A program made the translations under genes and the position numbers. A stretch of DNA of 64,000 nucleotides from Paraphysomonas bandaiensis (taxonomy: Eukaryota > Protista > Chrysophyceae). Positions 1 to 60,400 of the stretch are shown one piece after another. The stretch lies in NCBI GenBank assembly GCA_965644295.1, contig CBFFRP010000136.1, positions 1 through 64,000 on the forward strand, in the 5' to 3' direction. The notes beneath the pieces were generated by a model. The model worked only from the letters and a program-made list of their open reading frames with translations, had not been told where the DNA came from and made no database searches. Numbering within the stretch: position 1 is the stretch's first letter; every line of letters begins with the position of its first letter.

Positions 1-272
1 AAGTTTGGTAAAGTCAATCGCTAGTAGTTATCCTGTATTCTATGTAGCAATGAAATACAGAATATACATGACTACAGTATAGGAGTAGCTATTACAAGTA
101 TACAAAGAAACTGAAAATATAGTAGCTGTTAAAGATATGATTTGTAGAACAGAATGTTGATGTTGGTGAATGACGTGGTTCCTAACTCACAGGGCTACAA
201 CATCATAAACTTACTATATCTCCTATAATATCAATCAGTCAATATTGCACTAACTAAAAGCGTAAATTAATA
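1..272 (+). repeat. 5' LTR (partial)
   Basis: Matches 4873-5144 with no difference seen by eye. Ends ...AATTAATA immediately before the TGG of the PBS. Confidence 0.95.
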
Positions 273-3200
273 TGGTAGCGGATGGTAGTTTCACGAATGT
301 CGCCTCAGGCTCAAAGGTACCTCCCTTCGAGGAACTGAACTTCAAGAAATTCAAGAAGTTCTTCACCTCATTCCTCATGAGACACAATCGAGCTCATCTT
401 GTCCTCTCAAAGGATAAACCAAGGCACATTCATGATCTAGACTCTACAGTCCCAGCGGGAGCTCATATGACTGATGCACAGAAGAAGCGACTACGCAAAG
501 CGAAGAAACTCTGGAACACCCGGAACGAGACCGCGTACTCCTTCCTGATGGAAGTGTGCAATGCTCACCCAAAAGCAGGCACAACAGCGGCTCTCTACGA
601 AGGAAGTACAGCAAAAGGGTTACTACAGGCACTGGAAGAGAGATTTCTCAATGTTGAAAAGAATACAGTACAGGCAGAGGTCACAAAGTTCAATTCAATG
701 AAGATTACCTCAAGTCAGTCAGGAGCAGAGTTCGTCGACAGCGTTGAAGCCCAGGCCAAGATTCTCGAGAATCTAGGTCGTGAAGTCACGGAAGACGACA
801 AGCTCACTCGACTAAAGGAAGGTCTCACAGACAAGAGATATTCCCAACTAGCACACAGCCTGTATACAGCAAACGATGTGACATACGCAAGAGCAAGCAG
901 CCTAATCAAAGGGTATGAAAACACATCATTCGGCAAGCATGCGTTGCAAAATTCAGGGGAAGACAGTGTCAATCAAGCAGTGGATGACAGTAAATGGAAA
1001 GAGCACAAGAGAAAGGGCAGATGCAATAAGTGCAAGAAACTTGGCCACTTTGCTAGGGAGTGCAAGACTCCAGAGCATGTCATAAAGAGGATGAAGGGGA
1101 CAAGATCACAGAGAAAAGATAGAGATCACAGAAACAGGGGTGATAACAAAACAAAGCTACCTGTGTGTGAGATATGTGACATCCCAGGCCATCAGACTAA
1201 AGACTGCTTCCACTTGAAGACTGCTAAAGCTGCAGTGGTCAGTTCTAAACGGGGGCGAGACTCTAGAAGGGAAACGGCACCCTACAAGAACAAGAAGAAA
1301 CCGCGAGTGTCTGTACATGATTCAGAAGATGAAGCGGGATACGAATCGATGATATGTGTGGAAGAAGAGGTGAATCTAGCACAGAGCATGTCAGATGTTA
1401 TTTATTTAGACAGCGGGTGCAACAAGATGATCCTTACCTCCAAAAACCACATGACCAACCTTCAGCGCGCTGATAGGCAGATGTCCACAGCGAACAAAGG
1501 TAAACTGTCAATACACAGTGTTGGCGATGTAGGAAGCTTTAAAAAGGTGTACTACGCACCTGAAGCAAGTAAGAACCTCGTAGATATGAAGAGCATCACA
1601 GATAGGGGTTGTGTTGTGACGTTCGATAATGATGAAGTCGTCATTCGAAATAAGACTACGAACAAGACACTCATTAGACAGAGAAGTGTTAATGGATTAT
1701 ATCCAGTTCGACTCGAAGACTTACTTCAGCTTGGAGAAGAATCCTCAGCAGCACTTGAGGAGCAGGGGTTTGATGACCAGCGAATTCTATGGCACAAAAG
1801 ACTTGGCCATGTCAACTATGATAAACTGACTGAGTCCGACCGCCGAGGCCTAGTTGATGGAATAAATCTGGACAAGAAATATTTCAGAAAAAAACACAAA
1901 AAAACGATATGCAAATGTAATACCTGCATGCGATCGAAACTCACGAGAAAGAACTTCAGGACTCCACGCCAGTTGATGAACTTAGACAACAACCCAAAGG
2001 AGAGAGGGGTGCTCAGTGCAGATACGATGGAAGTCCTAAACACGCCATCGATGGAAGGCTACAAACATGTGTTACTATTCAAGCACAGTGATGCAAAACA
2101 TGTATGGGCTTATGGGTTGAAAAACAAGACTGGGAGTGAAGTGTTAAAGTGTATGAAGGACATGGTAGAGACCCAACTTGTCAAAGAAGGATTGCAACTA
2201 CGACGATATCATGCAGATGGCGCAGGAGAACTAGTAGGGCAACATGTCAGGCAGTACTTACGTGAAACCACCAGCACAAGGACTGTACAGGTTACTTGGA
2301 CTCCACGTGACACACCCGAAATGAATTCGCTATCGGAACGCACTAATCGTACAGTGAAGGAGATGGCCCTTGCTATATTGCTCGATAGTGGCATGCCATC
2401 AGTATTTTGGTTCAAAGCAGTCTTGCATGCTGTATATCTGATCAACAGGTTACCTACGAAGACAACGAAAGGATACATCTCACCTTTTGAGTATATTACT
2501 GGAACCGCACCAGATGTGAGTGACTTGAAGATCTGGGGCTGCAAGGCATGGGCTATTGTGCCGAAGGAGCAGCGCCGCAAAGAGTGGAAAGAAAAGGGAA
2601 AACCTGGATACTATATGGGACAATGTCAACAACCTGTTGGACACCAAATATATATTCCAGACCTGAATGCTATTATTGTTGCAGTCAATGCACAGTTTGA
2701 TGAGTCAATTCCAGAGCGTTCACAGGAGTATTTCGACGAAATAGATAATCTACAAATCGACACCTCAGAAACAGCAGAGAGTGTAAATGACTATCAGTAC
2801 CTGGTGGGCCTCAGACATCTTGATGGACACCTGTGTTATGTTACCACCAGAGTGATAGAGAGAAGAGGAGTCATTGTTGCATATAGGAGATTAGATATGA
2901 AAGGAAATACTACCGAGGAGCAAACTCCAATTCATATCAAAGATGTAGTAAAGATGACTCACTCTACAAAGTGTCAGACCGACAAGTTTAATAGTTTGCG
3001 AAATGAGTTGGATCAGACTTGTAATGACAGTGACAATGAACAGAGGACTCCTGACCGCTCAAATCGGGGCGCATCTTCAACAGGTGGGGCAGATCGAAAT
3101 CCCAGAACTGAAAAACGACCTCGAAAAAAACGGCACATTGTTAACGTTGGTGTCCTCGGCGATGTCTCATTGTTTCTTGATTCCTCCAACAGCACAATTA

Positions 3201-4789
3201 AAGAGCCACAGACGCTGGCAGAAGCAAAGAAGACTCCACAGAGAACATACTGGATTGAAGCTACCAGGAAGGAGGTGCACAAGCTTGAACGAAGGACATG
3301 CTGGAAGATTGTCCGAAGGCCGAAACACCGAAAAATCATAAAATCTAAATTGGTCTTTAAAGTAAAGCGCGACCATCTTGGAAAAATTAAGAAGTTCAAA
3401 GTTCGACTTGTGGCGAAAGGGTTTACTCAAGAACAAGGAGTCGACTATAATGAGACATTCTCCCCAGTAGCTAAAGGTGTATCATTTAGGCTAGCACTGG
3501 CACTGGCTCTGCGATACAATCTGCAACTCCGTCAACTCGATGTAGAAACGGCATTTCCGTATGCAGATCTGGACGAAGACGTGTTTATGTCTCCACCTGC
3601 AGGAATAGATATTCCACAAGGCTGTTGTTTGAAGATTCTGAAGAGTTTGTATGGCCTAAAACAAGCGCCTCGAAATTGGCATTCAATGCTGAAGGACAGT
3701 ATAAAGGCGATGGGGTATAAACAATGTGTTCTTGACCCATGTTTATTTGTACTCAAGGGTACTGATGATAACCTACATATGATACTTGTGTATGTAGATG
3801 ATATCATTGTGCTCAGCTCTGACAGCCGTCATATTGAAGAAGTCATCAGCGCCTTTAAGACTCAATATGCCATGCAAGATATGGGGGACCTTAAGCATTA
3901 TTTAGGTCTTACCATTGAGCGTCATAATGGCCAGATTAAGTTACATCAGTCTGCATATGCTAAAGATGTTGTGGCCAGATTCAATCACTTGTTGTCAGAA
4001 AAGAAGAGACGGTGCAAGGCAACCACACCTCTACCACCTGGCCTAAAGTTGTCCAAGGATGCAAAAGAGGAAGAAACTCGAAAACAGAGAGAATACGTTG
4101 ATGCATTTCCCTATCAATCTGTTATTGGTGCCTTAATGTATTTGGCAGTGCATACTAGACCAGACATGGCATATACAGTAAATCTTCTCTCCCGGTTCAC
4201 CACAAGACCCACGTACGCTGCATGTCAAGCTGCTCTGCATACTTTATTGTATTTAGAAAATACAGTTGATCAAGGTATCATATTTCCTAATTTCACAGAT
4301 GAAGACCCTCTATGTGTGTACTCTGATGCAGATTGGGCCGGAGATCTGGATACATGCAGATCCACTACAGGGTATATCGTATATCTGTGGGGTGCTCCAA
4401 TTGCATGGCAGTCCAGACTGCAGCCAACAGTGGCTACGTCGACTATGGAAGCTGAATATATGGCTGCATATGCTGCAATTCAGGAGATTGTATGGATACG
4501 AGGGGTGATGACAGAGCTCGGAATTCGTGGATTTGAGCTCAGTAAGAATGCGTCTCCAACAATCTTGAATATGGACAGCAAGAGTGCGATTGATCTAGCT
4601 CAGAACCCGGTAAATCATAAACGTTCCAAGCATATTCGGATCAAGTATCATTGGATTCGAGAGCAAGTGGGAGGCTGTATCGTCAGGCTGAATCATGTGC
4701 CAACGGCAGAGATGACAGCAGACGTGATGACTAAAGCCTTGTCCGAGAAGCTGCACTATCAGCATGTGCACACTATGGTATCGCACTAA
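272..4789 (+). CDS. Copia Gag-Pol polyprotein (1505 aa)
   Basis: Two CCHC knuckles (CNKCKKLGHFAREC, CEICDIPGHQTKDC); protease YLDSG; HHCC (WHKRLGH...CNTC); integrase D-D-E (SADT / HADGAGE / SERTNR); RT YGLKQAPRNW and YVDD; RNase H YSDADWAG, EAEY, ADVMTK. Confidence 0.97.
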   Translation: MVADGSFTNVASGSKVPPFEELNFKKFKKFFTSFLMRHNRAHLVLSKDKPRHIHDLDSTVPAGAHMTDAQKKRLRKAKKLWNTRNETAYSFLMEVCNAHPKAGTTAALYEGSTAKGLLQALEERFLNVEKNTVQAEVTKFNSMKITSSQSGAEFVDSVEAQAKILENLGREVTEDDKLTRLKEGLTDKRYSQLAHSLYTANDVTYARASSLIKGYENTSFGKHALQNSGEDSVNQAVDDSKWKEHKRKGRCNKCKKLGHFARECKTPEHVIKRMKGTRSQRKDRDHRNRGDNKTKLPVCEICDIPGHQTKDCFHLKTAKAAVVSSKRGRDSRRETAPYKNKKKPRVSVHDSEDEAGYESMICVEEEVNLAQSMSDVIYLDSGCNKMILTSKNHMTNLQRADRQMSTANKGKLSIHSVGDVGSFKKVYYAPEASKNLVDMKSITDRGCVVTFDNDEVVIRNKTTNKTLIRQRSVNGLYPVRLEDLLQLGEESSAALEEQGFDDQRILWHKRLGHVNYDKLTESDRRGLVDGINLDKKYFRKKHKKTICKCNTCMRSKLTRKNFRTPRQLMNLDNNPKERGVLSADTMEVLNTPSMEGYKHVLLFKHSDAKHVWAYGLKNKTGSEVLKCMKDMVETQLVKEGLQLRRYHADGAGELVGQHVRQYLRETTSTRTVQVTWTPRDTPEMNSLSERTNRTVKEMALAILLDSGMPSVFWFKAVLHAVYLINRLPTKTTKGYISPFEYITGTAPDVSDLKIWGCKAWAIVPKEQRRKEWKEKGKPGYYMGQCQQPVGHQIYIPDLNAIIVAVNAQFDESIPERSQEYFDEIDNLQIDTSETAESVNDYQYLVGLRHLDGHLCYVTTRVIERRGVIVAYRRLDMKGNTTEEQTPIHIKDVVKMTHSTKCQTDKFNSLRNELDQTCNDSDNEQRTPDRSNRGASSTGGADRNPRTEKRPRKKRHIVNVGVLGDVSLFLDSSNSTIKEPQTLAEAKKTPQRTYWIEATRKEVHKLERRTCWKIVRRPKHRKIIKSKLVFKVKRDHLGKIKKFKVRLVAKGFTQEQGVDYNETFSPVAKGVSFRLALALALRYNLQLRQLDVETAFPYADLDEDVFMSPPAGIDIPQGCCLKILKSLYGLKQAPRNWHSMLKDSIKAMGYKQCVLDPCLFVLKGTDDNLHMILVYVDDIIVLSSDSRHIEEVISAFKTQYAMQDMGDLKHYLGLTIERHNGQIKLHQSAYAKDVVARFNHLLSEKKRRCKATTPLPPGLKLSKDAKEEETRKQREYVDAFPYQSVIGALMYLAVHTRPDMAYTVNLLSRFTTRPTYAACQAALHTLLYLENTVDQGIIFPNFTDEDPLCVYSDADWAGDLDTCRSTTGYIVYLWGAPIAWQSRLQPTVATSTMEAEYMAAYAAIQEIVWIRGVMTELGIRGFELSKNASPTILNMDSKSAIDLAQNPVNHKRSKHIRIKYHWIREQVGGCIVRLNHVPTAEMTADVMTKALSEKLHYQHVHTMVSH
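273..292 (+). promoter_or_regulatory. Primer-binding site, initiator tRNA-Met-like
   Basis: TGGTAGCGGATGGTAGTTTC. It starts with TGG (complement of CCA) and has the spacing of the known eukaryotic iMet PBS TGGTAGCAGAGGATGGTTTC. Confidence 0.75.
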
Positions 4790-7479: not shown

Positions 7480-8730
7480 ATATTAATTTGTAATATTTTG
7501 TGTACTCTGTACTCACACTGTTTATATCGCTGTCTGATGATGTTGAGGTTTTAGAAGTTCTACACATTGAAATTCTATGCTGTTTTTCATATAAAGGGGG
7601 CATTCTGTGTTGCAGTAATAAAATATAATTATATCTAGTTACATTTCTCTTTATTCGATGGTGATATATAGTACGACATAGCATTTACTATTGTTGATCG
7701 AGTGTAAAATGACTAGCGCGACTTTCATGTGAAGAACATTTACACATTTACTGTACTTCGACTACCTTGGTATGATACTTTCAACCGTAGCAAAATATCC
7801 TTGTCATGTCGTAGCTTTAGAGAAGTAAAAAAAGTAATACTAGCTAATTTAGTTGTACCCTAATGTTTGTGCTTATTTGAATGAGCATTTGTGTGGCTTT
7901 GATTCTAAAGAATCAGCAACCAAGAATTTGCAAATACTTTTGTCTACCAATTGATAATTTTCTAATTTCAAAACCTTAATATATCAAGTTCATTCATTGG
8001 TGCCACGGATGACTTCTAAGAAGTTCTCCGAGTAAATAATAGCTGTGTGTAAATATACAGTGCAACATGTCACCATACAGCAGATATCTGAAACTCTCTT
8101 TCCTTCTATCAAGAAAGGTTAATATCGACAAAAATAACAGACCCAGTATCGATAATAGAAACAATAATACCATTTCTAATATATAATTTGTTGCTTAGTA
8201 CAAGTATCTGAATCCAAAAGTTTCCCATCAGATTTCCAATATGGCCGATGAACTGATACCGGGGTTTAACTCACTTTTCTGTAGCAAATGCCCTCTCCGA
8301 CAGACCACTGTCCAGATAAACAAAAGAGATTATCGCCAATGTGAGAACTCTCTCGTTATTATGTTATGTTTTAAATACATACGACTGCTTGTATTGCCCT
8401 TCGGCTACTCTTTTACCATATTCTGTTAACTTCTTGGACTATCACACTTAGTCTGTGGTATTTGGACTTGTGTGACACATTGTGCTCTCCAGTGACTTCT
8501 TGTACACAAGATTTCTCTTCCAGAAGATCTCAGGAACATAGCATCGATTCTATCCTATTAAGGTAGCTATGTTTGCAGCTGTTTGTATATACTCCTGTAT
8601 CGTCAATGAGGTATGGTAATATCTTTACAGTGTCTTCAAGTTCTTTTATGCGCATTGATTGCCTAAAGTGCTCTCTCAACAAGATTAACATTTCATCATC
8701 CTGTTGTTTCTGTTCCATGTTAAACGACAA
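7480..8730 (-). pseudogene. Decayed coding sequence of unknown family
   Basis: Stop-interrupted coding-like frames on - (MEQKQQDDEMLILLREHFRQSMRIKELE...). Synonymous-biased differences from the inverted copy indicate former coding constraint. Confidence 0.45.
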
Positions 8731-8853
8731 TATAACAATAAATTAATGACTGAATAAATGAACAGAAACAACAGGATGATGAAATGTTAATTTTATTGCG
8801 AGAGCACTTCAGGCAGTCAATGCGCATAAAAGAACTGGAAGAAACTGTAAAGA
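8622..8853. repeat. Imperfect inverted repeat (~95-bp arms, ~45-bp spacer)
   Basis: 8622-8715 is the reverse complement of 8760-8853 with 7 mismatches. An extra 25-bp copy follows at 8852-8876. Confidence 0.9.
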
Positions 8854-9301
8854 GAGCACTTTAGGCAATCAATGCGGGTAAGGGAACTATGTCATACAGC
8901 TATTCTGTGTAGTTAAGAGCTGACAACGCATTCCAATCATGTAATAACAAGGATTTCCACATAATTAATCTGTCATAGTAAGTTTTCCAGCCTTAGGCCA
9001 CTAATTATAGTGGAGACAAAAGACAAAACGACAAAAGACATTTTTTTTCATCAGAATTGTTTTTGTCGGGTGCAAACGAAGCCGTAATTATAGTGCACAC
9101 AGAAAGACAAAAGACAAAACAGTGTTTTTGTGTTTAAATTCAAATTTCTTTTCATTCTCTGTTCGCTTGATCTCACTGAATATATTGCGAAGCAAAGCAT
9201 TAAGCATTGACAGTGACTGTGTAAAGTTGATAGCATGATATTTCGCGTGTGTGCATTGTCCCGGAAGTTGTCTGTGCAGGACATCCTTGATCAAACAGCT
9301 C

Positions 9302-9553
9302 ATGAAGCAATCTCCAGCGTCCAGTTAGGATCGTATCTTTGCAAGAAGAAATGTCTACGAACGGATTGGCTACGATAACACACCATGGGGACTCCTGCTG
9401 AGGAATACAAGGATAAGAGATCCCACAACTTGTGAAGGTATGACTTTTGGTATTGTATTATATACCATGTCACACTGCATCAGGCAAGCAATTCAGAACG
9501 CGTTTTCGAATTACGTATCAAATGTTTCAAGCACGATGCTTTTTATTGCCTTG
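9302..9553 (+). pseudogene. Truncated PIF/Harbinger transposase N-terminus (left arm)
   Basis: With intron 9438-9483 removed it reads ...YDNTPWGLLLRNTRIRDPTTCEGKQFRTRFRITYQMFQ, resembling the FRxRFR N-terminal motif of Harbinger transposases. In-frame stop at 9326; no DDE core seen. Confidence 0.7.
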
Positions 9554-11289
9554 ATTAGCATCATCATCACATTTATATAAACACGCTCAATCTCTGCGAG
9601 TGCACCTGATTTGAATGATAGTAAGATGAGGCGCACAATCCTGATACGCACGACGTAGTGACGGACACCTTGAAAGAGCTGGGTTGAAAGAGCTGGGTGT
9701 TACTGCCCTTAACTTCCTATATAGCATCAGATATGGCACTTAAACTCTCCTGCAATATTCTTGAACTTGTTTCGAAGTCCAGGTTATGAAGATAGATCGC
9801 ATGCACTGACATCATTATTATCTTCCACATCAGACGAAAGATGGATGATGACTTGAAGTGTTTGATGAACTCCTTTTGATAGTTGACTCATCATTGTGGT
9901 TTCTCTATAATTGTGTAATATAACGATATCTATACATATGACTGCCAATATCATAATTGATAACTAAGATAGAAGTGAGTTTATGTTAACAGTTAACCCA
10001 ATATTGAAGTTGAATGTGTATATTTAGTTTATTACAATATGTTGCCAATATGTTATATGTACAACACACACTACATTTCAGTTGTTTGTGTAGTTAGATC
10101 CCATTCAATATATCTGTGATTACATGCAAGATTAAATGCATCTTACAATTAGATCATGTGATAATTATTAGTCAATGTAATAAACAAAGTTGTGAATTTA
10201 AAACTGACACTGGCAAACGTCATTATAACTAACGTGTATAATATAGTAACAACATATGTATATAACAAATAGAACTTGCATGGATAATAGAAAATCAATC
10301 GGACCAAGATAATTACCATTGGTTGGCGTTGCTGTTAGTGTCATTGTTTCGAGAGTTGTGCCAGCTCTCTTCTTATCCTTTCAGCTTCTTTACGATTCCA
10401 GGAGAGCTCCACCGTCTTGACGAGCAACTCTCTCATCTGCACGCCTGGCGGTATTGTTTCGTCCTGCATCAACAAATATTACTATTGAATAACATTATAA
10501 GATATATATACCTTATTCAAAAGGATAACAAAATCTGGAGTGAACTCATTAATGACTGATTTCCTTCTTTATTTCCAGTGTTGTTTATTTCTTCCAAATA
10601 GTTTCAGAGTTGATTCCAAAGAGTCCTTTGGATGTATGTATGTATGTATGTAAGTTTAAATCAACACACACTCTTCACCTTCCACAATCTGATAATAGTT
10701 ATGGTTCCTGCCGGAATATACTCGGTCAGGGATACGGTTTCACTGATGTAGATGTCAGTGCTTTCATTGTTGTCAGGAGTGCGGCGTGTCGTAAGAAGTT
10801 TCACAGACATATTTCTCCAAGCTCTGTTATCGTCGTGGTCTTGACACCATGGGTCTCCATGCCTGCCAAAGCAATGGCAAGCTTCTGCCAATGCTTGAGA
10901 CTATAAATCATTGCGCCTGGTGCTGTTCATCAGTGTGTATGACTATTAATGAAGCTCCATTGTGTAAAAATGTCTTCCACTCTCGATTTCTGTCCTTGAA
11001 GACAAAAAGACATAAATTTGCTCATATTTATGTCTTTCTGTCGTCGGAAAAATGTCTTCTGTCTTTGAAAAGCTGTAGTTATAGGAGGACAAAAGACAGA
11101 AATCCGTCGAAAGACAAAATGTCTTTCTGTCTTCGGCCGACAGAAAGACATAAATATGAGCAAATTTATGTCTTTTTGTCTTCAAGGACAGAAATCGAGA
11201 GTGGAAGACATTTTTACACAATGGAGCTTCATTAATAGTTATACACACTGATGAACAGCACCAGGCGCAATGATTTATAGTCTCAAGCA

Positions 11290-11526
11290 TTGGCAGAAGC
11301 TTGCCATTGCTTTGGCAGGCATGGAGACCCATGGTGTCAAGACCACGACGATAACAGAGCTTGGAGAAATATGTCTGTGAAACTTCTTACGACACGCCGC
11401 ACTCCTGACAACAATGAAAGCACTGACATCTACATCAGTGAAACCGTATCCCTGACCGAGTATATTCCGGCAGGAACCATAACTATTATCAGATTGTGGA
11501 AGGTGAAGATGTGTGTTGATTTAAAC

Positions 11527-11557
<31 letters not shown>

Positions 11558-11875
11558 CATACATACATACATACATACATACATCCAAAGGACTCTTTGG
11601 AATCAACTCTGAAACTATTTGGAAGAAATAAACAACACTGGAAATAAAGAAGGAAATCAGTCATTAATGAGTTCACTCCAGATTTTGTTATCCTTTTGAA
11701 TAAGGTATATATATCTTATAATGTTATTCAATAGTAATATTTGTTGATGCAGGACGAAACAATACCGCCAGGCGTGCAGATGAGAGAGTTGCTCGTCAAG
11801 ACGGTGGAGCTCTCCTGGAATCGTAAAGAAGCTGAAAGGATAAGAAGAGAGCTGGCACAACTCTCGAAACAATGA
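11290..11875 (+). pseudogene. Decayed spliced second ORF of the Harbinger element (mirror on - at ~10341-10891)
   Basis: Coding-like pieces (ETIWKK; RRKSVINEFTPDFVILLNK | DETIPPGVQMRELLVKTVELSWNRKEAERIRRE) joined by a GT-AG intron at ~11706-11752. Stops and frameshifts are present. Confidence 0.5.
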
Positions 11876-12655
11876 CACTAACAGCAACGCCAACCAATGG
11901 TAATTATCTTGGTCCGATTGATTTTCTATTATCCATGCAAGTTCTATTTGTTATATACATATGTTGTTACTATATTATACACGTTAGTTATAATGACGTT
12001 TGCCAGTGTCAGTTTTAAATTCACAACTTTGTTTATTACATTGACTAATAATTATCACATGATCTAATTGTAAGATGCATTTAATCTTGCATGTAATCAC
12101 AGATATATTGAATGGGATCTAACTACACAAACAACTGAAATGTAATGTGTGTTGTACATATAACATATTGGCAACATATTGTAATAAACTAAATATACAC
12201 ATTCAACTTCAATATTGGGTTAACATAAACTCACTTCTATCTTAGTTATCAATTATGATATTGGCAGTCATATGTATAGATATCGTTATATTACACAATT
12301 ATAGAGAAACCACAATGATGAGTCAACTATCAAAAGGAGTTCATCAAACACTTCAAGTCATCATCCATCTTTCGTCTGATGTGGAAGATAATAATGATGT
12401 CAGTGCATGCGATCTATCTTCATAACCTGGACTTCGAAACAAGTTCAAGAATATTGCAGGAGAGTTTAAGTGCCATATCTGATGCTATATAGGAAGTTAA
12501 GGGCAGTAACACCCAGCTCTTTCAACCCAGCTCTTTCAAGGTGTCCGTCACTACGTCGTGCGTATCAGGATTGTGCGCCTCATCTTACTATCATTCAAAT
12601 CAGGTGCACTCGCAGAGATTGAGCGTGTTTATATAAATGTGATGATGATGCTAAT

Positions 12656-12907
12656 CAAGGCAATAAAAAGCATCGTGCTTGAAACATTTGATACGTAATT
12701 CGAAAACGCGTTCTGAATTGCTTGCCTGATGCAGTGTGACATGGTATATAATACAATACCAAAAGTCATACCTTCACAAGTTGTGGGATCTCTTATCCTT
12801 GTATTCCTCAGCAGGAGTCCCCATGGTGTGTTATCGTAGCCAATCCGTTCGTAGACATTTCTTCTTGCAAAGATACGATCCTAACTGGACGCTGGAGATT
12901 GCTTCAT
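12656..12907 (-). pseudogene. Mirror copy of truncated Harbinger transposase (right arm)
   Basis: Reverse complement of 9302-9553. Confidence 0.7.
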
Positions 12908-13669
12908 GAGCTGTTTGATCAAGGATGTCCTGCACAGACAACTTCCGGGACAATGCACACACGCGAAATATCATGCTATCAACTTTACACAGTCACTGTC
13001 AATGCTTAATGCTTTGCTTCGCAATATATTCAGTGAGATCAAGCGAACAGAGAATGAAAAGAAATTTGAATTTAAACACAAAAACACTGTTTTGTCTTTT
13101 GTCTTTCTGTGTGCACTATAATTACGGCTTCGTTTGCACCCGACAAAAACAATTCTGATGAAAAAAAATGTCTTTTGTCGTTTTGTCTTTTGTCTCCACT
13201 ATAATTAGTGGCCTTACGCACATTACCCTGCCAAATTGAAGTGCGAGATGCGGAATTTTAAACAAAGACTTAGGGGTTTTGAGTATAAAACCGCGGTTTT
13301 AATATCAAAAAACTGAGTTTTACGAAAAATATCTGTTTTTTCACAAACACTGGGCTTTTTACAAGTAAACCTGTTTTTTTTAGGAGTGAGTATAAAATCT
13401 ACAGTATATGCATGACATATTGTCAAAAAATCCAGTATATATATCTGTAAAATTCCCTTTTTCGGCTTTCTAGATACCTGTATTCCAACATACTACGCAA
13501 ACTACCTACTACACTCCACTCACAGAGCAGAACCACACTCTGCCCTCCTTCATATAAATAATACAAGTACACACGAGCTTGCAGGAACGAAGTGTGCAAG
13601 TTTTAAGTAAAGTGTAGCGTATCAAGTACTGGTGTATGTGTATGGTGTACTGTATATGGTATAGTCCCT

Positions 13670-15024
13670 ATGGATGCACTGAACCCCCTGTATAGATTTT
13701 CTACCCGATAGCTTCATTGTCAATTGCAAAATAATTTGTTTTAATAGAAGTAGAAAGAGGCATTGCCTCAAACCCCATTGCGGGGGAACTCTTTGCTGTT
13801 GCTGCCTGTATAAATGGAGAAGCAAGATAGACCGAGCTCTCTTGATTTCATGGTTATTGAAAGATTTAGGATGGATGACCACGAATGTTTACCTGGGATG
13901 GATATTCGGCGGTGTGGCGGTGCTGCTGCACTTGGCAGTCCTCTTCATTGACTGGCCTCATAGTGTGCCATTCCGTTTTTATCATTCTTCATTAGTTCTT
14001 TGGATTGTGGGAAACTTCTTGTGGATGTCTGTAGAGTTCATGGTATACAGGGAGTCCTCTGATGTTCACTTCGGCCCGCATACTCCAGTGGGAGGAATGA
14101 CAGTGAAGGTCGGTGATCAACTTACGGAAGCAAAATCCTGGTTGTTTCTTACGGCGATAGCTATACAGTTTTTATTGTTTATTCTCATTCGTATGAATAT
14201 TTTGGCGATGCCGCTGGATGTATTTGACGATGATAGTATAGATGGCGGAAGTGTGGATATGGATATGGATATCGATGGCTCGCAACAGTCCGCCTCAGCC
14301 CCCCTGACCTCCACACAGGAAGGCCAACCGCTTGTTGAGGACATGGAGTCTAACGACAATCGCATGACCCCCAGCAACCTTTACGTAGCTGACAAGTATC
14401 CGTTTGGGTTTACTCTGACCTTCATTGAGAATAGCTACATTGTTCTCTGGATAGCCAAGGACTATTTCTGGTCATGGGCGACCGGAGACTTTGAAGTACA
14501 ACAGCGTGTGGGTTACTTCACAGGTGCGTACACTTTGCAATTCTTGTCCTGTTTTAGTTATCGTGTCCTGCAGAGGTAGTTTCAATGTTTTTTGGCATAT
14601 TGAGCGTATGCTTATATACGTATATTGCTTATGCCTGGAGAAAACATTTTGTAAATATGATGGACTCACTTACCTCTTGGTGTTGGTTGTTCGCAAACTT
14701 TGTTTGGATGGCTGGTGAAGTATTTATCAGGTACATTTTGTAGTCATGTTATGTATGTTATATAACCGTTTGGAGTACAGATATGACAACTTACAGCTGG
14801 ACGATGCCGAGCAAGCAGATGACGCTGTCACCCGGCTTGTGTCTGGAATATTTTTTCTTATTGGAATGCAGATTCAGTTTATCGTTATATTTCATGAAAT
14901 GATTGATGCTCTGAAGTCAAGGGAACGTGCAAAGCTATACAGTAAATCTCGTCTGGAAATGATGCCTGTCACCAACATTGACGTAGATTATGACCATATA
15001 GTAAGCCTGGAAATGATAGACTAA
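13670..15024 (+). CDS. Multi-pass membrane protein of unknown function (spliced)
   Basis: Hydrophobic segments in ORF 13842-14579 and later exons. Internal duplication ISWLLKDLGW / VLWIAKDYFW. The start is inferred from an in-frame splice of ATG 13670 via an intron at ~13690-13747. Confidence 0.75.
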
Positions 15025-50869: not shown

Positions 50870-50875
50870 AAAAAA
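50870..50875 (-). terminator. Pol III oligo-T terminator of 5S gene
   Basis: T6 on the - strand at the 3' end of helix I. Confidence 0.85.
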
Positions 50876-50993
50876 CGGACAGTACCCGGACTTCGCACGT
50901 GGTCACCCACCGTACTACTAACCGGGCCAGATGCAACTTAACTTCCGCGAGCGGAACGAGAGCGGGTGCGGTTTGCATTGTATGACCGTCCAT
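50874..50993 (-). rRNA. 5S rRNA gene
   Basis: ~120 nt, ATGGACGGTCATAC...GAAGTTAAG...GGTTAGTAGTACGGTGGGTGACCACGTGCGAAGTCCGGGTACTGTCCGT. 5' ATGGACGGT pairs with 3' ACTGTCCGT (helix I). Box A and box C-like elements are present. Confidence 0.95.
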
Positions 50994-51477: not shown

Positions 51478-54400
51478 ATGAAACTGCTCGCTTACTTATT
51501 TCTCTGTGTATTCATATCAGTACAGATCACAATAGTGGATACCACGAATCATCCAACTAGTTTACCAAGTTGTAATCCCAGTGGGGTCCCTTCTCGCATG
51601 CCATCAGGTGTACCAACCGGTGAACCAAGTGGAGTTCCAACGCATATACCATCAATTTCTCCAAGCGGTGAGCCTAGTAGTATTCCAAGTGGTGAGCCTA
51701 CATCGGTTCCAAGCGGGGAACCATCGAGCATTCCCAGTGACGAGCCTACATCTCTTCCAAGTGGGGAACCGTCAAGTGTACCTAGTGGAGAACCATCAGG
51801 TCAGCCAAGCGGTGAACCGAGCAGTATTCCTAGTGGTGAGCCAAGTGGAATGCCAAGTGGTGACCCAACGTCGGTTCCCAGTGGTGAACCTTCAGGTGTT
51901 CCCAGTGGCGAACCAACATCAGTTCCCAGCAGGGTGCCATCGTGCATTCCCAGTAGTGAGCCGTCAGCTCTTCCAAGCGTTGATCCTAGCAGTATTCCTA
52001 GTGGGGAACCTTCAGGTATACCAACTGGCGAACCTAGCAGTATTCCAAGTGGAGACCCTACATCTAAACCTAGTGGTGAACCTAGTAGTATTCCGAGTGG
52101 AGAGCCCACATCACTTCCAAGTGGTGAGCCAACATCTCTTCCAAGTGGGGAACCATCGAATGTACCTAGTGGTGAGCCAAGTGCTGTTCCAAGTGGTGAA
52201 CCTAGCAGTGTTCCCAGTGGTGAGCCAAGTGGTATACCAACGGGCGAACCCAGTAGTATTCCAAGTGGTGAACCAACGTCTATTCCTAGCAGGGAACCTA
52301 GTAGTATGCCCAGTGGTGAGCCAACATCTCTTCCAAGTGGGGTACCGTCTAGTGTACCTAGCGGTGGGCCAAGCGCAGTTCCAAGTGGTGAACCCAGCGG
52401 TATTCCAAGTGGAGTACCATCAAGTATTCCAAGTGGAGAGCCGTCAGCTCTTCCGAGCGGTGAACCTAGCAGTATTCCTAGTGGTGAGCCAAGTGCTGTT
52501 CCAAGTGGTGAGCCAAGTGGTATACCAACGGGGGAACCAAGTAGTATTCCTAGTGGTGAACCAACGTCGATTCCCAGCGGGGAACCTTCAAGTGTTCCAA
52601 GTGGAGAGCCCACATCACTTCCGAGTGGGGAACCTAGTAGTATACCCAGTGGTGAGCCAACATCTCTTCCAAGTGGGGAACCGTCTAGTGTACCTAGCGG
52701 TGAGCCAAGTGCTGTTCCAAGTGGTGAACCTAGCAGTGTTCCTAGTGGTGAGCCAAGTAGTGTTCCGACGGGCGAACCTAGCAGTGTACCAAGTGGGGAG
52801 CCTACATCTATTCCCAGTGGTGAACCTAGTAGTATTCCCAGCGGTGAGCCAAGCGAAGTTCCAAGTGGAGAACCTAGCAGTATTCCTAGCGGTGAGCCAA
52901 GTGCAGTTCCAAGTGGTGAACCTAGCAGTATTCCTAGCGGAGAGCCAAGTGCTGTTCCTAGCGGTGAGCCAAGCAGTATTCCGAGTGGTGAGCCAACTCC
53001 TGTTCCGAGTGGAGAGCCTACATCTAATCCCAGTGTTGTACCTAGTAATATTCCGAGTGGTGAACCTAGTAGTATTCCCAGCGGGGAGCCTTCAAGTATT
53101 CCAAGTGGAGAGCCCACATCACTTCCAAGTGGGGAACCGTCTAGTGTACCTAGCGGTGAGCCAAGTGCTGTTCCAAGTGGTGAACCTAGCAGTGTTCCTA
53201 GTGGTGAGCCGAGTAGTGTTCCGACGGGCGAACCTAGCAGTGTACCAAGTGGAGAGCCTACATCTATTCCCAGTGGTGAACCTAGTAGTATTCCTAGCGG
53301 TGAGCCAAGCGCAGTTCCAAGTGGAGAACCTAGCAGTATTCCAAGTGGTGTGCCAAGCAGTATTCCGAGTGGTGAGCCAACTCCTGTTCCGAGTGGAGAG
53401 CCTACATCTTATCCCAGTGGTGTACCTAGTAGTATTCCTAGTGGTGAACCAACGTCGATTCCCAGCGGGGAACCTTCAAGTGTTCCAAGTGGAGAGCCAA
53501 CATCTCTTCCAAGTGGGGAACCGTCTAGTGTACCTAGCGGTGAGCCAAGTGCTGTTCCAAGTGGTGAACCTAGCAGTGTTCCTAGTGGTGAGCCAAGTAG
53601 TGTTCCGACGGGCGAACCTAGCAGTGTACCAAGTGGAGAGCCTACATCTATTCCCAGTGGTGAACCTAGTAGTATTCCCAGCGGTGAGCCAACATCTCTT
53701 CCAAGTGGGGAACCGTCTAGTGTACCTAGCGGTGAGCCAAGCGCAGTTCCAAGTGGTGAACCCAGCGGTATTCCAAGTGGAGAGCCGTCAGCTCTTCCGA
53801 GCCGTGAACCTAGCAGTATTCCTAGTGGTGAGCCAAGTGGTATACCAACGAGGGAACCAAGCAGTATTCCGAGTGGTGAACCAACGTCGATTCCCAGCGG
53901 GGAACCTAGCAGTTTTCCTAGCGGTGAGCCAAGCGCAGTTCCAAGTGGTGAGCCCAGCGGTATTCCAAGTGGAGAGCCGTCAGCTCTTCCGAGCGGTGAA
54001 CCTAGCAGTATTCCTAGTGGTGAGCCAAGTGCTGTTCCAAGTGGTGAGCCAAGTGGTATACCAACGGGGGAACCAAGTAGTGTTCCAAGTGGAGAGCCCA
54101 CATCACTTCCGAGTGGGGAACCTAGTAGTATACCCAGTGGTGAGCCCACATCACTTCCAAGTGGGGAACCGTCTAGTGTACCTAGCGGTGAGCCAAGTGC
54201 TGTTCCAAGTGGTGAACCTAGCAGTGTTCCTAGTGGTGAGCCAAGTAGTGTTCCGACGGGCGAACCTAGCAGTGTACCAAGTGGAGAGCCTACATCTATT
54301 CCCAGTGGTGAACCTAGTAGTATTCCCAGCGGTGAGCCAACATCGCTTCCAAGTGGGGAACCTAGCAGTATTCCTAGCGGTGAGCCAAGCGCAGTTCCAA

Positions 54401-57400
54401 GTGGTGAACCCAGCGGTATTCCAAGTGGAGAACCATCAAGTATTCCAAGTGGTGAGCCAAGTGGTACACCAACGGGGGAACCTAGTAGTATTCCTAGTGG
54501 TGAACCAACGTCGATTCCCAGTGGTGAACCTTCAAGTGTTCCAAGTGGAGAGCCCACATCACTTCCGAGTGGGGAACCTAGTAGTATACCTAGCGGTGAG
54601 CCAAGTGCTGTTCCAAGTAGTGAACCTAGCAGTGTTCCTAGTGGTGAGCCAAGTAGTATTCCGACGGGTGAACCTAGCCGTATTCCTAGTGGTGAGCCAA
54701 GTGCTGTTCCCAGTGGTGAGCCAAGTGGTACACCAACGGGGGAACCTAGTAGTATTCCGAGTGGTGAACCAACGTCGATTCCCAGCGGGGAACCTTCAAG
54801 TGTTCCAAGTGGAGAGCCCACATCATTTCCGAGTGGGGAACCTAGTAGTATACCCAGTGGTGAGCCAACATCTCTTCCAAGTGGGGAACCGTCTAGTGTA
54901 CCTAGCGGTGAGCCAAGTGCTGTTCCAAGTGGTGAACCTAGCAGTGTTCCTAGTGGTGAGCCAAGTAGTGTTCCGACGGGCGAACCTAGCAGTGTACCAA
55001 GTGGAGAGCCTACATCTATTCCCAGTGGTGAACCTAGTAGTATTCCCAGCGGTGAGCCAACATCTCTTCCAAGTGGGGAACCTAGCAGTATTCCTAGCGG
55101 TGAGCCAAGCGCAGTTCCAAGTGGTGAACCCAGCGGTATTCCAAGTGGAGAACCATCAAGTATTCCAAGTGGAGAGCCGTCAGCTCTTCCGAGCGGTGAA
55201 CCTAGCAGTATTCCTAGTGGTGAGCCAACGTCGATTCCCAGCGGGGAACCTTCAAGTGTTCCAAGTGGAGAGCCCACATCACTTCCAAGTATTGAACCTA
55301 GTAGTATACCCAGTGGTGAGCCAACATCTCTTCCAAGTGGGGAACCGTCTAGTGTACCTAGCGGTGAGCCAAGTGCTGTTCCTAGTGGTGAACCTAGCAG
55401 TGTTCCTAGTGGTGAGCCAAGTAGTGTTCCGACGGGCGAACCCAGCAGTGTACCAAGTGGAGAGCCTACATCTATTCCCAGTGGTGAACCTAGTAGTATT
55501 CCTAGCGGTGAGCCAACATCTCTTCCAAGTGGGGAACCCAGCGGTATTCCAAGTGGAGAGCCGTCAGCCCTTCCGAGCGGTGAACCTAGCAGTATTCCTA
55601 GTGGTGAGCCAAGTGCTGTTCCAAGTGGTGAGCCAAGTGGTACACCAACGGGGAAACCAAGTAGTATTCCTAGTGGTGAACCAACGTCGATTCCCAGCGG
55701 GGAACCTTCAAGTGTTCCAAGTGGAGAGCCCACATCACTTCCAAGTATTGAACCTAGTAGTATACCCAGTGGCGAGCCAACATCACTTCCAAGTGGGGAA
55801 CCGTCTAGTGTACCTAGCGGTGAGCCAAGTGCTGTTCCTAGTGGTGAACCTAGCAGTATACCAAGTGGTGAGCCAAGTACTGTTCCGACAGGCGAACCTA
55901 GCAGTGTACCAAGTGGAGAGCCTACATCTATTCCCAGTGGGGAACCGTCTAGTGTACCTAGCGGTGAGCCAAGCGCAGTTCCAAGTGGTGAACCCAGCGG
56001 TATTCCAAGTGGAGAGCCGTCAGCTGTTCCGAGCGGTGAACCTAGCAGTATTCCTAGTGGTGAGCCAAGTGGTACACCAACGGGGAAACCAAGTAGTATA
56101 CCCAGTGGTGAGCCAACATCTCTTCCAAGTGGGGAACCGTCTAGTGTACCTAGCGGTGAGCCAAGTGCTGTACCAAGTGGTGAACCTAGCAGTGTTCCTA
56201 GTGGTGAGCCAAGTGCTGTTCCAAGTGGTGAACCTAGCAGTGTACCAAGTGGTGAGCCAAGTACTGTTCCGACAGGCGAGCCTAGTAGTATTCCTAGCGG
56301 TGAGCCAAGCGCAGTTCCAAGTGGTGAACCCAGCGGTATTCCAAGTGGAGAACCATCAAGTATTCCAAGTGGAGAGCCGTCAGCTCTTCCGAGCGGTGAA
56401 CCTAGCAGTATTCCTAGTGGTGAGCCAAGTGCTGTACCAAGTGGTGAACCTAGCAGTGTTCCTAGTGGTGAGCCAAGTGCTGTTCCAAGTGGTGAACCTA
56501 GCAGTGTACCAAGTGGTGACCCAAGTACTGTTCCGACAGGCGAGCCTAGTAGTATACCCAGCGGAGAGCCTACATCTATTCCAAGCGGTGAGCCAAGCGC
56601 AGTTCCAAGTGGTGAACCCAGCGGTATTCCAAGTGGAGAGCCGTCAGCTTCTCCGAGCGGTAAACCTAGCAGTATTCCTAGTGGTGAGCCAAGTGCTGTT
56701 CCAAGTGGTGAGCCAAGTGGTATACCAACGGGGGAACCAAGTAGTATTCCTAGTGGTGAACCAACGTCGATTCCCAGCGGGGAACCTTCAAGTGTACCAA
56801 GTGGAGAGCCCACATCACTTCCGAGTGGGGAACCTAGTAGTATACCCAGTGGTGAGCCAACATCTCTTCCAAGTGGGGAACCGTCTAGTGTACCTAGCGG
56901 TGAGCCAAGTGCTGTTCCAAGTGGTGAACCTAGCAGAGTTCCTAGTGGTGAGCCAAGTAGTGTTCCGACGGGCGAACCTAGCAGTGTACCAAGTGGAGAG
57001 CCTACATCTATTCCCAGTGGTGAACCTAGTAGTATTCCCAGCGGTGAGCCAAGCGCAGTTCCAAGTGGGGAACCCAGCGGTATTCCAAGTGGAGAACCAT
57101 CAAGTATTCCGAGCGGTGAACCTAGCAGTATTCCTAGTCGTGAGCCAAGTGCTGTTCCAAGTGGTGAGCCAAGTGGTACACCAACGGGGGAACCAAGTAG
57201 TATTCCTAGTGGTGAACCAACGTCGATTCCCAGCGGGGAACCTTCAAGTGTTCCAAGTGGAGAGCCCACATCACTTCCGAGTGGGGAACCTAGTAGTATA
57301 CCCAGTGGCGAGCCAACATCTCTTCCAAGTGGGGAACCGTCTAGTGTACCTAGCGGTGAGCCAAGTGCTGTTCCAAGTGGGGAACCTAGCAGTGTTCCTA

Positions 57401-60400
57401 GTGGTGAGCCAAGTAGTGTTCCGACGGGCGAACCTAGCAGTGTACCAAGTGGAGAGCCTACATCTATTCCAAGTGGTGAACCTAGTAGTATTCCCAGCGG
57501 TGAGCCAACATCTCTTCCAAGTGGGGAACCTAGCAGTATTCCTAGCGGTGAGCCAAGCGCAGTTCCAAGTGGTGAACCCAGCGGTATTCCAAGTGGAGAA
57601 CCATCAAGTATTCCGAGCGGTGAACCTAGCAGTATTCCTAGTGGTGAACCTAGCAGTATTCCTAGTGGTGAGCCAAGTAGTATACCAACGGGGGAACCAA
57701 GTAGTATTCCTAGTGGTGAACCAACGTCGATTCCCAGCGGGGAACCTTCAAGTGTTCCAAGTGGAGAGCCCACATCACTTCCGAGTGGGGAACCTAGTAG
57801 TATACCCAGTGGTGAGCCAACATCTCTTCCAAGTGGGGAACCGTCTAGTGTACCTAGCGGTGAGCCAAGTGCTGTTCCAAGTGGTGAACCTAGCAGTGTT
57901 CCTAGTGGTGAGCCAAGTAGTGTTCCGACGGGCGAACCTAGCAGTGTACCAAGTGGAGAGCCTACATCTATTCCCAGTGGTGAACCTAGTAGTATTCCAA
58001 GCGGTGAGCCAAGCGCAGTTCCAAGTGGAGAACCATCAAGTATTCCAAGTGGAGAGCCGTCAGCTCTTCCGAGCGGTGAACCTAGCAGTATTCCTAGTGG
58101 TGAGCCAAGTGCTGTTCCAAGTGGTGAGCCAAGTGGTATACCAACGGGGGAACCAAGTGGTATTCCTAGTGGTGAACCAACGTCGATTCCCAGCGGGGAA
58201 CCTTCAAGTGTTCCAAGTGGAGAGCCCACATCACTTCCGAGTGGGGAACCTAGTAGTATACCCAGTGGCGAGCCAACATCTCTTCCAAGTGGGGAACCGT
58301 CTAGTGTACCTAGCGCTGAGCCAAGTGCTGTTCCAAGTGGGGAACCTAGCAGTGTTCCTAGTGGTGAGCCAAGTAGTGTTCCGACGGGCGTACCTAGCAG
58401 TGTACCAAGTGGAGAGCCTACATCTATTCCCAGTGGTGAACCTAGTAGTATTCCCAGTGGTGAGCCAACATCTCTTCCAAGTGGGGAACCGTATAGTGTA
58501 CCTAGCGGTGAGCCCAGCGGTATTCCAAGTGGTGAGCCGTCAGCTTCTCCGAGCGGTGAGCCTAGCAGTATTCCTAGTGGTGAGCCAAGTGCTGTTCCAA
58601 GTGGTGAGCCAAGTGGTATACCAACGGGGGAACCAAGTAGTATACCTAGTGGTGAACCAACGTCGATTCCCAGCGGGGAACCTTCAGGTGTTCCAAGTGG
58701 AGAGCCCACATCACTTCCGAGTGGGGAACCTAGTAGTATACCCAGTGGCGAGCCAACATCTCTTCCAAGTGGGGAACCGTCTAGTGTACCTAGCGGTGAG
58801 CCAAGTGCTGTTCCAAGTGGTGAACCTAGCAGTGTTCCTAGTGGTGAGCCAAGTAGTGTTCCGACGGGCGAACCTAGCAGTGTACCAAGTGGAGAGCCTA
58901 CATCTATTCCCAGTGGTGAACCTAGTAGTATTCCCAGCGGTGAGCCAACATCTCTTCCAAGTGGGGAACCGTCTAGTGTACCTAGCGGTGAGCCAAGCGC
59001 AGTTCCAAGTGGTGAACCCAGCGGTATTCCAAGTGGAGAGCCGTCAGCTTCTCCGAGCGGTAAACCTAGCAGTATTCCTAGTGGTGAGCCAAGTGCTGTT
59101 CCAAGTGGTGAGCCAAGTGGTACACCAACGGGGGAACCTAGTAGTATTCCTAGTGGTGAACCAACGTCGATTCCCAGCGGGGAACCTTCAAGTGTTCCAA
59201 GTGGAGAGCCCACATCACTTCCGAGTGGGGAACCTAGTAGTATACCCAGTGGTGAGCCAACATCTCTTCCAAGTGGGGAACCGTCTAGTGTACCTAGCGG
59301 TGAGCCAAGTGCTGTTCCAAGTGGTGAACCTAGCAGTGTTCCTAGTGGTGAGCCAAGTAGTGTTCCGACGGGCGAACCTAGCAGTGTACCAAGTGGAGAG
59401 CCTACATCTATTCCCAGTGGTGAACCTAGTAGTATTCCCAGCGGTGAGCCAACATCTCTTCCAAGTGGGGAACCTAGCAGTATTCCTAGCGGTGAGCCAA
59501 GCGCAGTTCCAAGTGGTGAACCCAGCGGTATTCCAAGTGGAGAACCATCAAGTATTCCGAGCGGTGAACCTAGCAGTATTCCTAGTGGTGAACCTAGCAG
59601 TATTCCTAGTGGTGAGCCAAGTGCTGTTCCAAGTGGTGAGCCAAGTGGTATACCAACGGGGGAACCAAGTAGTATTCCTAGTGGTGAACCAACGTCGATT
59701 CCCAGCGGGGAACCTTCAAGTGTTCCAAGTGGAGAGCCCACATCACTTCCGAGTGGGGAACCTAGTAGTATACCCAGTGGTGAGCCAACATCTCTTCCAA
59801 GTGGGGAACCGTCTAGTGTACCTAGCGGTGAGCCAAGTGCTGTTCCAAGTGGTGAACCTAGCAGAGTTCCTAGTGGTGAGCCAAGTAGTGTTCCGACGGG
59901 CGAACCTAGCAGTGTACCAAGTGGAGAGCCTACATCTATTCCCAGTGGTGAACCTAGTAGTATTCCCAGCGGTGAGCCAACATCTCTTCCAAGTGGGGAA
60001 CCTAGCAGTATTCCTAGCGGTGAGCCAAGCGCAGTTCCAAGTGGTGAACCCAGCGGTATTCCAAGTGGAGAACCATCAAGTATTCCAAGTGGAGAGCCGT
60101 CAGCTCTTCCGAGCGGTGAACCTAGCAGTATTCCTAGTGGAGAGCCAAGTGCTGTTCCAAGTGGTGAGCCAAGTGGTATACCAACGGGGGAACCAAGTAG
60201 TATTCCTAGTGGTGAACCAACGTCGATTCCCAGCGGGGAACCTTCAAGTGTTCCAAGTGGAGAGCCCACATCACTTCCGAGTGGGGAACCTAGTAGTATA
60301 CCCAGTGGTGAGCCAACATCTCTTCCAAGTGGGGAACCGTCTAATGTACCTAGCGGTGAGCCAAGTGCTGTTCCAAGTGGTGAACCTAGCAGTGCACCAA

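Follow-up and report, generated by a model that had tools for sequence, protein, structure and literature searches.

A palindromic PIF/Harbinger-type insertion with two identical outer ends in Paraphysomonas bandaiensis, possibly mobilised as one element

The first recognition and shutdown of active DNA transposons are still poorly understood, and to our knowledge those cases that have been worked out (Mu killer, Ac killer, Stabiliser) are few, come from plants or flies, and consist of the element itself in inverted duplication. Non-autonomous elements made of inverted copies of a cut-and-paste transposon are also known from other superfamilies, namely Double Ds of maize, in which one element is inserted in another and all four ends are kept, and palindromic Tc1-related elements of C. 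elegans such as Tc6. Here the architecture shared by the plant and fly examples is described in a PIF/Harbinger-type family of a small marine eukaryote, the chrysophyte Paraphysomonas bandaiensis. The DNA analysed, referred to below as the window, comprises 64,000 nucleotides (nt) of contig CBFFRP010000136.1 (assembly GCA_965644295.1, positions 1 to 64,000 of the forward strand), and the element in question is a palindromic insertion of 4,218 bp at window positions 8996-13213, in which two copies of a transposon are fused head to head with their inner ends lost.

Mu killer (Muk) of maize is described as a partial inverted duplication of a DNA transposon with two copies of the same terminal repeat (TIRA) and the 5' part of the transposase gene (a partial inverted mudrA), predicted to give a hairpin RNA on the kilobase scale (PMC3440606). 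The palindrome resembles Muk in being an inverted duplication of a transposon end together with an 83-amino-acid (aa) open frame homologous to the frame that precedes the DDE domain in related elements. The two differ in that Muk belongs to Mutator and its silencing was shown genetically, whereas the insertion described here is of the PIF/Harbinger type, has a clean target-site duplication (TSD) and an exact empty site, and has arms that appear to derive from two source copies. Because the arms are without catalytic sequence and the site is intergenic and rich in transposable elements (TEs), the likeness to Muk is architectural only.

In maize, a re-replication model holds that re-replicated DNA from next to the donor is carried along in composite insertions; unlike them, the palindrome contains no donor-flank DNA. 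Ac killer 1 and the composite insertions produced by alternative transposition of Ac/Ds are described as giving rise to double-stranded RNA (dsRNA) and small interfering RNAs in maize and, like the palindrome, as consisting of inverted fractured pieces bounded by transposon termini, with aberrant use of ends (10.1101/2020.01.07.897926; PMC13635294). New Stabiliser (NSt) of Antirrhinum and Lk-P(1A) of Drosophila are reported to be, as here, two head-to-head copies of one DNA transposon, and to act as family-specific repressors via a hairpin transcript or small RNAs; in that account both keep two intact elements, with 1.9 kb between the two Tam3 ends of NSt, whereas here the inner ends are deleted and only the outer pair is left (10.1101/2024.06.24.600476). 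Fold-back inversions at double-strand breaks, as described (PMC7467729, PMC10622511), resemble the palindrome in that a small hairpin determines a short asymmetric centre and homology at the junctions is slight or absent, but such an inversion copies one molecule, whereas the arms studied here differ at ancestral and derived sites and the duplication stops at the transposon termini. Our literature search, which was incomplete and does not establish novelty, found no description of a palindromic PIF/Harbinger dimer, and the insertion is a well-documented case within a kind of transposon rearrangement that was already known.

The palindrome consists of two inverted arms of 2,048 and 2,076 bp separated by a centre of 94 bp (11044-11137). 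A repeat finder resolved it into three collinear inverted-repeat blocks that are 99-100% complementary:

8990-9990, paired with 12219-13219: block I1, 1001 nt
9992-10655, paired with 11561-12224: block I2, 664 nt
10672-11049, paired with 11132-11509: block I3, 378 nt

GGCC stands at both ends of the palindrome, both termini begin with GGCCACTAATTATAGTGGAGAC... and are identical over at least 55 nt, and a TTA adjoins each of them; outside the TTA the flanks are neither complementary to each other nor palindromic. The arms contain no tandem subrepeat arrays and consist of unique monomer sequence with one tetranucleotide microsatellite, so the insertion is not of the Foldback (FB) type. The preliminary description, made from the letters of the window alone, had reported two inverted arms, a 94-bp spacer, GGCC ends and TTA on both sides, and was correct in every one of these structural statements.

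A search of the organism's own genome (62.5 Mb in 669 contigs) with one arm as the query returned 87 matching stretches. Monomeric copies of about 2.2 kb, which the preliminary description had looked to as possible parents of the arms, are numerous, and full-length ones are found on contigs C218, C159, C241, C565 and C5. In the order of the monomer, a 50-bp terminal repeat at one end (the A end) is followed by TG, a subterminal stretch of 86-92 bp, a near-perfect palindrome of 45 bp (P), a body of about 1.9 kb, and the terminal repeat of the other end (the B end). The two ends have their first 17 nt in common and form an imperfect terminal inverted repeat (TIR) of about 50 bp, with diagnostic positions that differ further in; the A-type repeat begins with GGCCACTAATTATAGTGAGAC..., and the B-type repeat with GGCCACTAATTATAGTGGAGAC.... 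In the monomer, eight instances of the motif AGACA[AG]AA lie in the 200 bp next to the A end and four in the 200 bp next to the B end, and the 1.4-kb middle has none; these motifs are the likely binding sites for the proteins of the family. The palindrome carries 14 of them, restricted to the centre and to some 200 bp at either outer end, compared with five in the other ~60 kb of the window.

The affiliation of the family rests on relatives that share its termini. Members of a sister subfamily, designated G-type (about 2.5 kb, five copies found, e.g., C99:10146-12639), have the same 17-nt terminus and are 80-89% identical to the window element in both end regions; their 215-aa open frame matches the Pfam families Plant_tran (E=3.8e-15) and DDE_Tnp_4 (E=8.5e-11), in the C-terminal half only. 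At C198:57874-59968, a B end 97% identical to that of the window is followed by positions 40-158 of DDE_Tnp_4 in a 268-aa open frame; this copy is the best candidate for the source of the family's transposase. In these relatives the B end adjoins the 5' side of the transposase gene. Matching 3-bp duplications (TTA, TAA or TGA) flank twelve complete pairs of ends, including those of the palindrome and of a second composite on contig C78, and among 39 surveyed ends the target flank was TTA or TAA in 28 and TGA or TCA in five. Short deletion derivatives of 78 to 760 bp also belong to the family. A DDE transposase present in relatives, 3-bp TSDs, and short TIRs with subterminal motifs are features of PIF/Harbinger elements, an affiliation that had been proposed from the TTA duplication and the gene layout. 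No transposase domain was detected by Pfam in the window element itself, which by its kinship is a non-autonomous member of a PIF/Harbinger-type family.

Two further loci of this family are worth recording. At C435:29851-35899, a G-type element flanked by TTA on both sides is split by a nested 3.6-kb element with inverted ends of its own of about 100 bp; the 528-aa open reading frame (ORF) of the latter has a complete DDE_Tnp_4/Plant_tran domain and represents a different, possibly autonomous, Harbinger family. At C587:452-4280, a larger inverted repeat, whose 947-bp arms are 98.9% identical, encloses at its centre an internally deleted family element. The ends of a further family copy lie within these arms, the inner element has inverted instead of direct flanks, and the palindrome extends past the transposon ends.

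Comparison with the monomers allowed us to assign every part of the palindrome, including its boundaries and centre, as follows:

8993-8995: TTA TSD, left copy; the empty allele in public sequencing run X5 has one GCCTTA
8996-9045, + strand: outer TIR of B type (GGCCACTAATTATAGTGGAGAC...), matching the right terminus exactly and carrying the diagnostic bases of the B end
8996-11043, + strand: left arm, a monomer copy in inverted orientation that begins with the B end and closes with the small palindrome P
10998-11043: small palindrome P, inverted copy, the innermost part of the left arm
11044-11045: junction filler TC; monomers read ...CTGGAAAAATG and the window ...CGTCGGAAAAATG
11046-11137, + strand: native A-end subterminal region and centre of the palindrome, beginning at the loop of a 13-bp hairpin; every monomer matches from 11046
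11138-13213, + strand: right arm, which together with 11046-11137 makes up a monomer lacking only the A-end TIR
11139-11180: small palindrome P, native copy (repeat finder and monomer comparison)
13164-13213, - strand: outer TIR of B type; a contig of run X1 (13189-13667) crosses from it into the flank
13214-13216: TTA TSD, right copy, recognised from the sequence and the empty allele of run X5

All monomers match the window over 11046-13213, and to the left of the position equivalent to 11046 they continue with TG and the A-end repeat. Since the homology ends exactly where the 50-bp TIR would follow, 11046-13213 can be identified by comparison as a monomer without its A-end repeat. The break in this copy falls precisely at the loop of a 13-bp hairpin, GAAGACATTTTTC-TG-GAAAAATGTCTTC (monomer positions 38-65), that straddles the inner edge of the A-end repeat. 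The left arm stops at 11043, beside the 45-bp P, and the 2-bp filler TC joins it to 11046, so that the internal junction of the palindrome reads ...CTGTCGTCGGAAAAATG.... Both outer ends are of B type and identical, and both A ends are missing. The palindrome is thus a head-to-head fusion of two copies that lost their inner ends, with a junction of the end-joining type. The dimer had already been recognised in the preliminary description, which read the structure as an inverted dimer deprived of its other native end and bounded by the same end type on both sides. It had further remarked that the spacer is rich in subterminal motifs; this is true, and the reason is that the centre is the native A-side subterminal region. 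Insertion of one element into another was considered and rejected, there being no internal TIR and both outer ends being of B type.

A second composite was found at C78:279818-284496 (4,679 bp). It likewise has two B ends facing outward, no A ends and TTA on both flanks, and it is composed of a G-type part (positions 2494 down to 122) with a DDE_Tnp_4 fragment, fused head to head through about 10 bp to an A-type monomer part (positions 72 to 2215). With only 82% identity between its inverted parts, and with breakpoints unlike those in the window, the C78 composite is of independent origin; it is also older. A third break close to the A end occurs in a monomer on contig C111 (C111:180650-182821), whose A-end repeat is short of its first ~40 nt and which in its present form is unable to move on its own. 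Three separate breaks (in the window, C78 and C111) within about 140 bp of the A end therefore suggest that this hairpin-rich end is a recurrent weak spot, to which the near-identical one-ended relative and the older composite point from within the same genome.

Global alignment of the left and right arms reproduced exactly the differences listed in the preliminary description, of which the following concern repeat length:

9985-9991: 7-bp tandem duplication GTTAACA, left arm only
about 10632-10651: (ATGT)5 microsatellite, short allele, left arm
about 11529-11584: (ACAT)14 microsatellite, long allele with nine more units, right arm

In addition, there are a 1-bp indel at 10671 and single-nucleotide differences at 10071/12145 and 10941/11240, and nothing else. 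The indels account for the entire 28-bp difference in arm length (36-7-1 = 28 bp).

The two arms are not copies of one parent. Between the one-ended monomer on C111 and window 11046-13213, the only differences are a 4-bp cluster at 11062-11065 and one microsatellite unit, and in the family alignment the right arm and C111 show no mismatch over 2,082 aligned positions. They have two derived states in common, a T at the equivalent of 10071 and a 1-bp deletion at the equivalent of 10671, and at both sites the left arm has the state of most or all other copies, which is taken as ancestral. Changes private to the left arm are the 7-bp duplication, the G at 10941 and the short microsatellite. Because the right arm shares the two derived states of C111 and the left arm is ancestral there, the alignment indicates that the arms trace to two slightly different source copies, barring an ectopic conversion that involved C111 and the right arm. 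Self-copying of one element and a fold-back read artefact are both made unlikely by this result. Models in which one copy gave rise to both arms (fold-back, a hairpin-capped intermediate, or use of C111 on a sister chromatid) had been considered in view of the breakpoints at hairpins and of C111 being one-ended and identical to the right arm; they were rejected, since the left arm is without the two states that the right arm and C111 share.

The preliminary description had predicted an empty site, CCTTA|CGCAC, with a single TTA, and such an allele was found in another strain. The stretch occurs, whole or in part, in 20 of the 24 public runs listed, and the contigs of four runs were placed on 8300-13900. 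In run X5, a DNA contig of 3,323 bp joins position 8989 directly to 13211, with a depth of 107 against 110 for the flanking contigs. The joint omits 4,221 bp, i.e., 4,218 + 3, and the six letters GCCTTA fit either side of it. The allele reads ...TTTTCCAGCCTTACGCACATT..., with one TTA and no other gain or loss. An intron is an unlikely explanation of this joint: borders of the form GT..AG or CT..AC are obtained at none of the seven cut positions that are possible, and the intergenic, TE-rich flanks have even single-copy depth. Two insertions at different nearby sites followed by a deletion were also rejected, as the empty allele does not lack any flank DNA. Over the stretches covered by its contigs, X5 has one difference from the window in the flanks (8944 A>G); accordingly, the organism of X5 is the same species or a very close one. 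Because an exact empty allele exists in another strain, the insertion is polymorphic and young, and the sister strain offers a natural comparison of the locus with and without it.

The filled right junction is represented in run X1, which probably derives from the source sample, by the contig 13189-13667, which runs from the B-type terminus into the right flank. In run X11, with a depth of about 3.7, a contig starts exactly at 13211, where the filled and empty alleles part, and gives a weak hint that both alleles occur in that sample. No second-haplotype contig with the right flank was found in our search. Neither the internal junction nor the left flank was found in metagenome contigs of the Joint Genome Institute (JGI), from which the organism is seemingly absent, so this result is uninformative.

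How the two copies came to be fused between one pair of TTAs can be explained in several ways. The account that we tentatively prefer, at somewhat less than an even chance, is that the composite was built elsewhere and mobilised as a unit by transposase acting on two B ends. The inner A ends would have been lost, in one copy through a break at the loop of the 13-bp subterminal hairpin and in the other through a break at the edge of the 45-bp P; the broken ends would have been rejoined by end joining with a 2-bp filler, leaving two identical B ends facing outward. The transposase of the family, supplied in trans, could then take the composite as a single element, as its B ends share the TIR and the AGACA[AG]AA motifs. 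Finally, the composite would have been cut from its place of formation and pasted into the TTA at 8993-8995, which was thereby duplicated. The order of these events is inferred. In favour of this account we count the second composite on C78, the motif clusters at both ends, the exact empty site, and the fact that nowhere in the genome are there undeleted neighbouring pairs of copies (TIR, 0-30 bp, TIR). Since the outer ends are intact, the mobility of a palindrome with two same ends is directly testable.

Several points weigh against mobilisation as a unit. The internal junction is present only once in the genome, and no second copy of it points directly to an earlier site of the composite. 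The account presumes that the family transposase accepts two B ends. The runs gave short-word contigs and no long read across the whole structure. The matching TTAs alone cannot separate mobilisation as a unit from assembly on the spot, because two independent ends of the family agree in their flank by chance in about 27% of cases (39 ends surveyed). Moreover, the junction CC-TTA-GGCC at the edge of an element mimics the preferred target, so that a second hit into the TTA is plausible and would leave the same flanks and the same empty site. CC precedes TTA in many flanks of the family, and GGCC-TTA-GGCC is found at C218 and L030.

Assembly on the spot, which we regard as possible though rather unlikely, would begin with a monomer at the TTA, into which, beside the A end of the first copy, a second related copy was inserted in inverted orientation. 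The resulting near-perfect palindrome of about 4.4 kb would then have lost some 200 bp from its middle (both A-end TIRs and the middle TTA) and been rejoined, and the composite would never have moved. Such a history fits the two-source arms, the exact empty site, the TTA flanks and the end-joining junction, takes fewer steps than formation elsewhere followed by an extra hop, and has a ready target in the CC-TTA-GG junction, which equals the preference seen in the family flanks; long palindromes are also described as breaking readily at hairpin or cruciform structures (PMC8053094). It requires, however, a hit on one specific 3-bp site, and twice if C78 arose likewise, and the undeleted neighbouring pair that it passes through was not seen anywhere in the genome. 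An allele with a lone monomer was not seen at the site either, although only two runs have usable depth there. The earlier claim that the palindrome moved as such by means of two same ends therefore stands as no more than the likeliest account, with both ends indeed of B type, as a second hit with a central deletion fits all of the observations.

Alternatively, repair of a broken A-end hairpin in a single monomer might have copied the element in reverse, in place, through fold-back priming or a template switch at the 50-bp TIR homology, with synthesis halting at P and the new strand being joined to the other side of the break. Both breakpoints do lie at hairpin-forming sequences, the junction can be accounted for by 2-bp CC/GG microhomology and a 3-bp GTC repeat, and fold-back inversions primed by single-stranded hairpins are described as established in yeast (PMC7467729, PMC10622511). 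We nevertheless judge this origin improbable. The arms should have been identical at birth, so that the ancestral states of the left arm at two sites would take two reversions; the left terminus is of B type from nt 18 on, which leaves at most 17 bp of the original A-end TIR for priming; and the C78 composite unites two subfamilies whose arms are only 82% identical. An assembly artefact, i.e., a fold-back chimeric long read or a misjoin over a plain monomer, is the least credible explanation: fold-back artefacts in long reads are described as a known problem (10.1101/2025.07.15.664946), the runs gave no spanning long read, and the internal junction is absent from the JGI contigs, but so is the left flank there, and against an artefact stand a palindrome that ends exactly at transposon termini inside a contig of at least 64 kb with non-palindromic flanks, arm differences (a 36-bp microsatellite difference, the 7-bp duplication, the ancestral sites) that are unlike the random errors between two readings of one molecule, a centre that holds a 94-bp asymmetric native segment, a separate contig that shows the B-type end at the right flank, and the 82%-identical arms of C78, which are impossible as a fold-back read.

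Each arm of the palindrome carries the same short open frame:

9329-9577, + strand: 83-aa open frame similar to the one preceding the DDE domain in the G-type; a possible remnant of the 5' part of the transposase gene, with no domain match
12632-12880, - strand: mirror copy of the 83-aa open frame, identified by sequence comparison

The frame shows 75.8% identity over 62 aa to the one upstream of the G-type DDE domain, and from this likeness it may belong to the transposase gene. No ORF of the arms matched a Pfam family, and no catalytic domain was found in them; Pfam and Atlas searches with the open frames of the arms and of the G-type relatives detected no domain other than the C-terminal half of the transposase. 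As to a second gene (Myb/SANT/MADF), the opposite-strand frames of the G-type (100, 166 and 84 aa) gave no Pfam match at E<=1, and an Atlas search with the 166-aa frame gave no usable match; the window element retains a 45-aa piece of one of these frames. The reading of each arm as a truncated transposase followed by a convergent second ORF was not confirmed in that form, the arms offering the resemblance of the 83-aa frame to the pre-DDE frame for the former and no recognisable domain for the latter.

A transcript across the element would form about 2 kb of dsRNA. It would correspond to the ends of the element and to the first ~250 nt of the transposase gene, leaving out the catalytic part. 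The preliminary description, according to which such dsRNA would be directed against both family genes, was to this extent overstated, the arms containing neither a catalytic nor a recognisable second-gene domain. In a predicted fold, RNA of the central 801 nt forms one continuous stem (-722.7 kcal/mol, z = -96). Machinery for processing dsRNA is present in the genome, since it encodes a Dicer-like ORF of 1,695 aa with two RNase III domains and two Piwi-domain (Argonaute) loci (C377:216520-217656; C119:289883-290803; C212:91577-92526). It is conceivable, although we consider it quite doubtful, that the composite is a mobile self-propagating silencer: with two working ends retained, it would be spread by the transposase of the family and would yield, on read-through, a 2-kb hairpin directed against the ends of the family and the 5' region of the transposase gene. 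If this were true, a transposon family would carry the trigger of its own shutdown by RNA interference around the genome of an Argonaute- and Dicer-bearing marine protist, and, if small RNAs from the palindrome exist, the two strains would permit a simple test of silencing.

The surroundings of the palindrome are intergenic and TE-rich, with a copia-type polyprotein ORF (272-4789) on one side and a gene that starts near 13842 on the other. The former, on the + strand about 4 kb upstream of the palindrome, is an uninterrupted ORF of 1,505 aa in which a zinc knuckle, protease, integrase, reverse transcriptase and RNase H of the copia type were recognised by eye. To the right of the insertion, positions 13218-13381 are occupied by a dispersed repeat of about 165 bp with 24 other copies at 72-89% identity, which ends beside a TTA at 13380-13382; because it starts 2-3 bp from the TTA of the insertion, the palindrome was inserted at the edge of another repeat. 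Just to the left, at 8622-8888, there are two overlapping short inverted repeats (94 nt, 93%; 43 nt, 86%). Farther along the window, a 5S rRNA gene was identified at 50874-50993 on the - strand (Rfam RF00001, 100.7 bits), and near it, at 53409-63629 on the same strand, an ORF of 3,406 aa lies in a stretch with a uniform G+C content of 53%.

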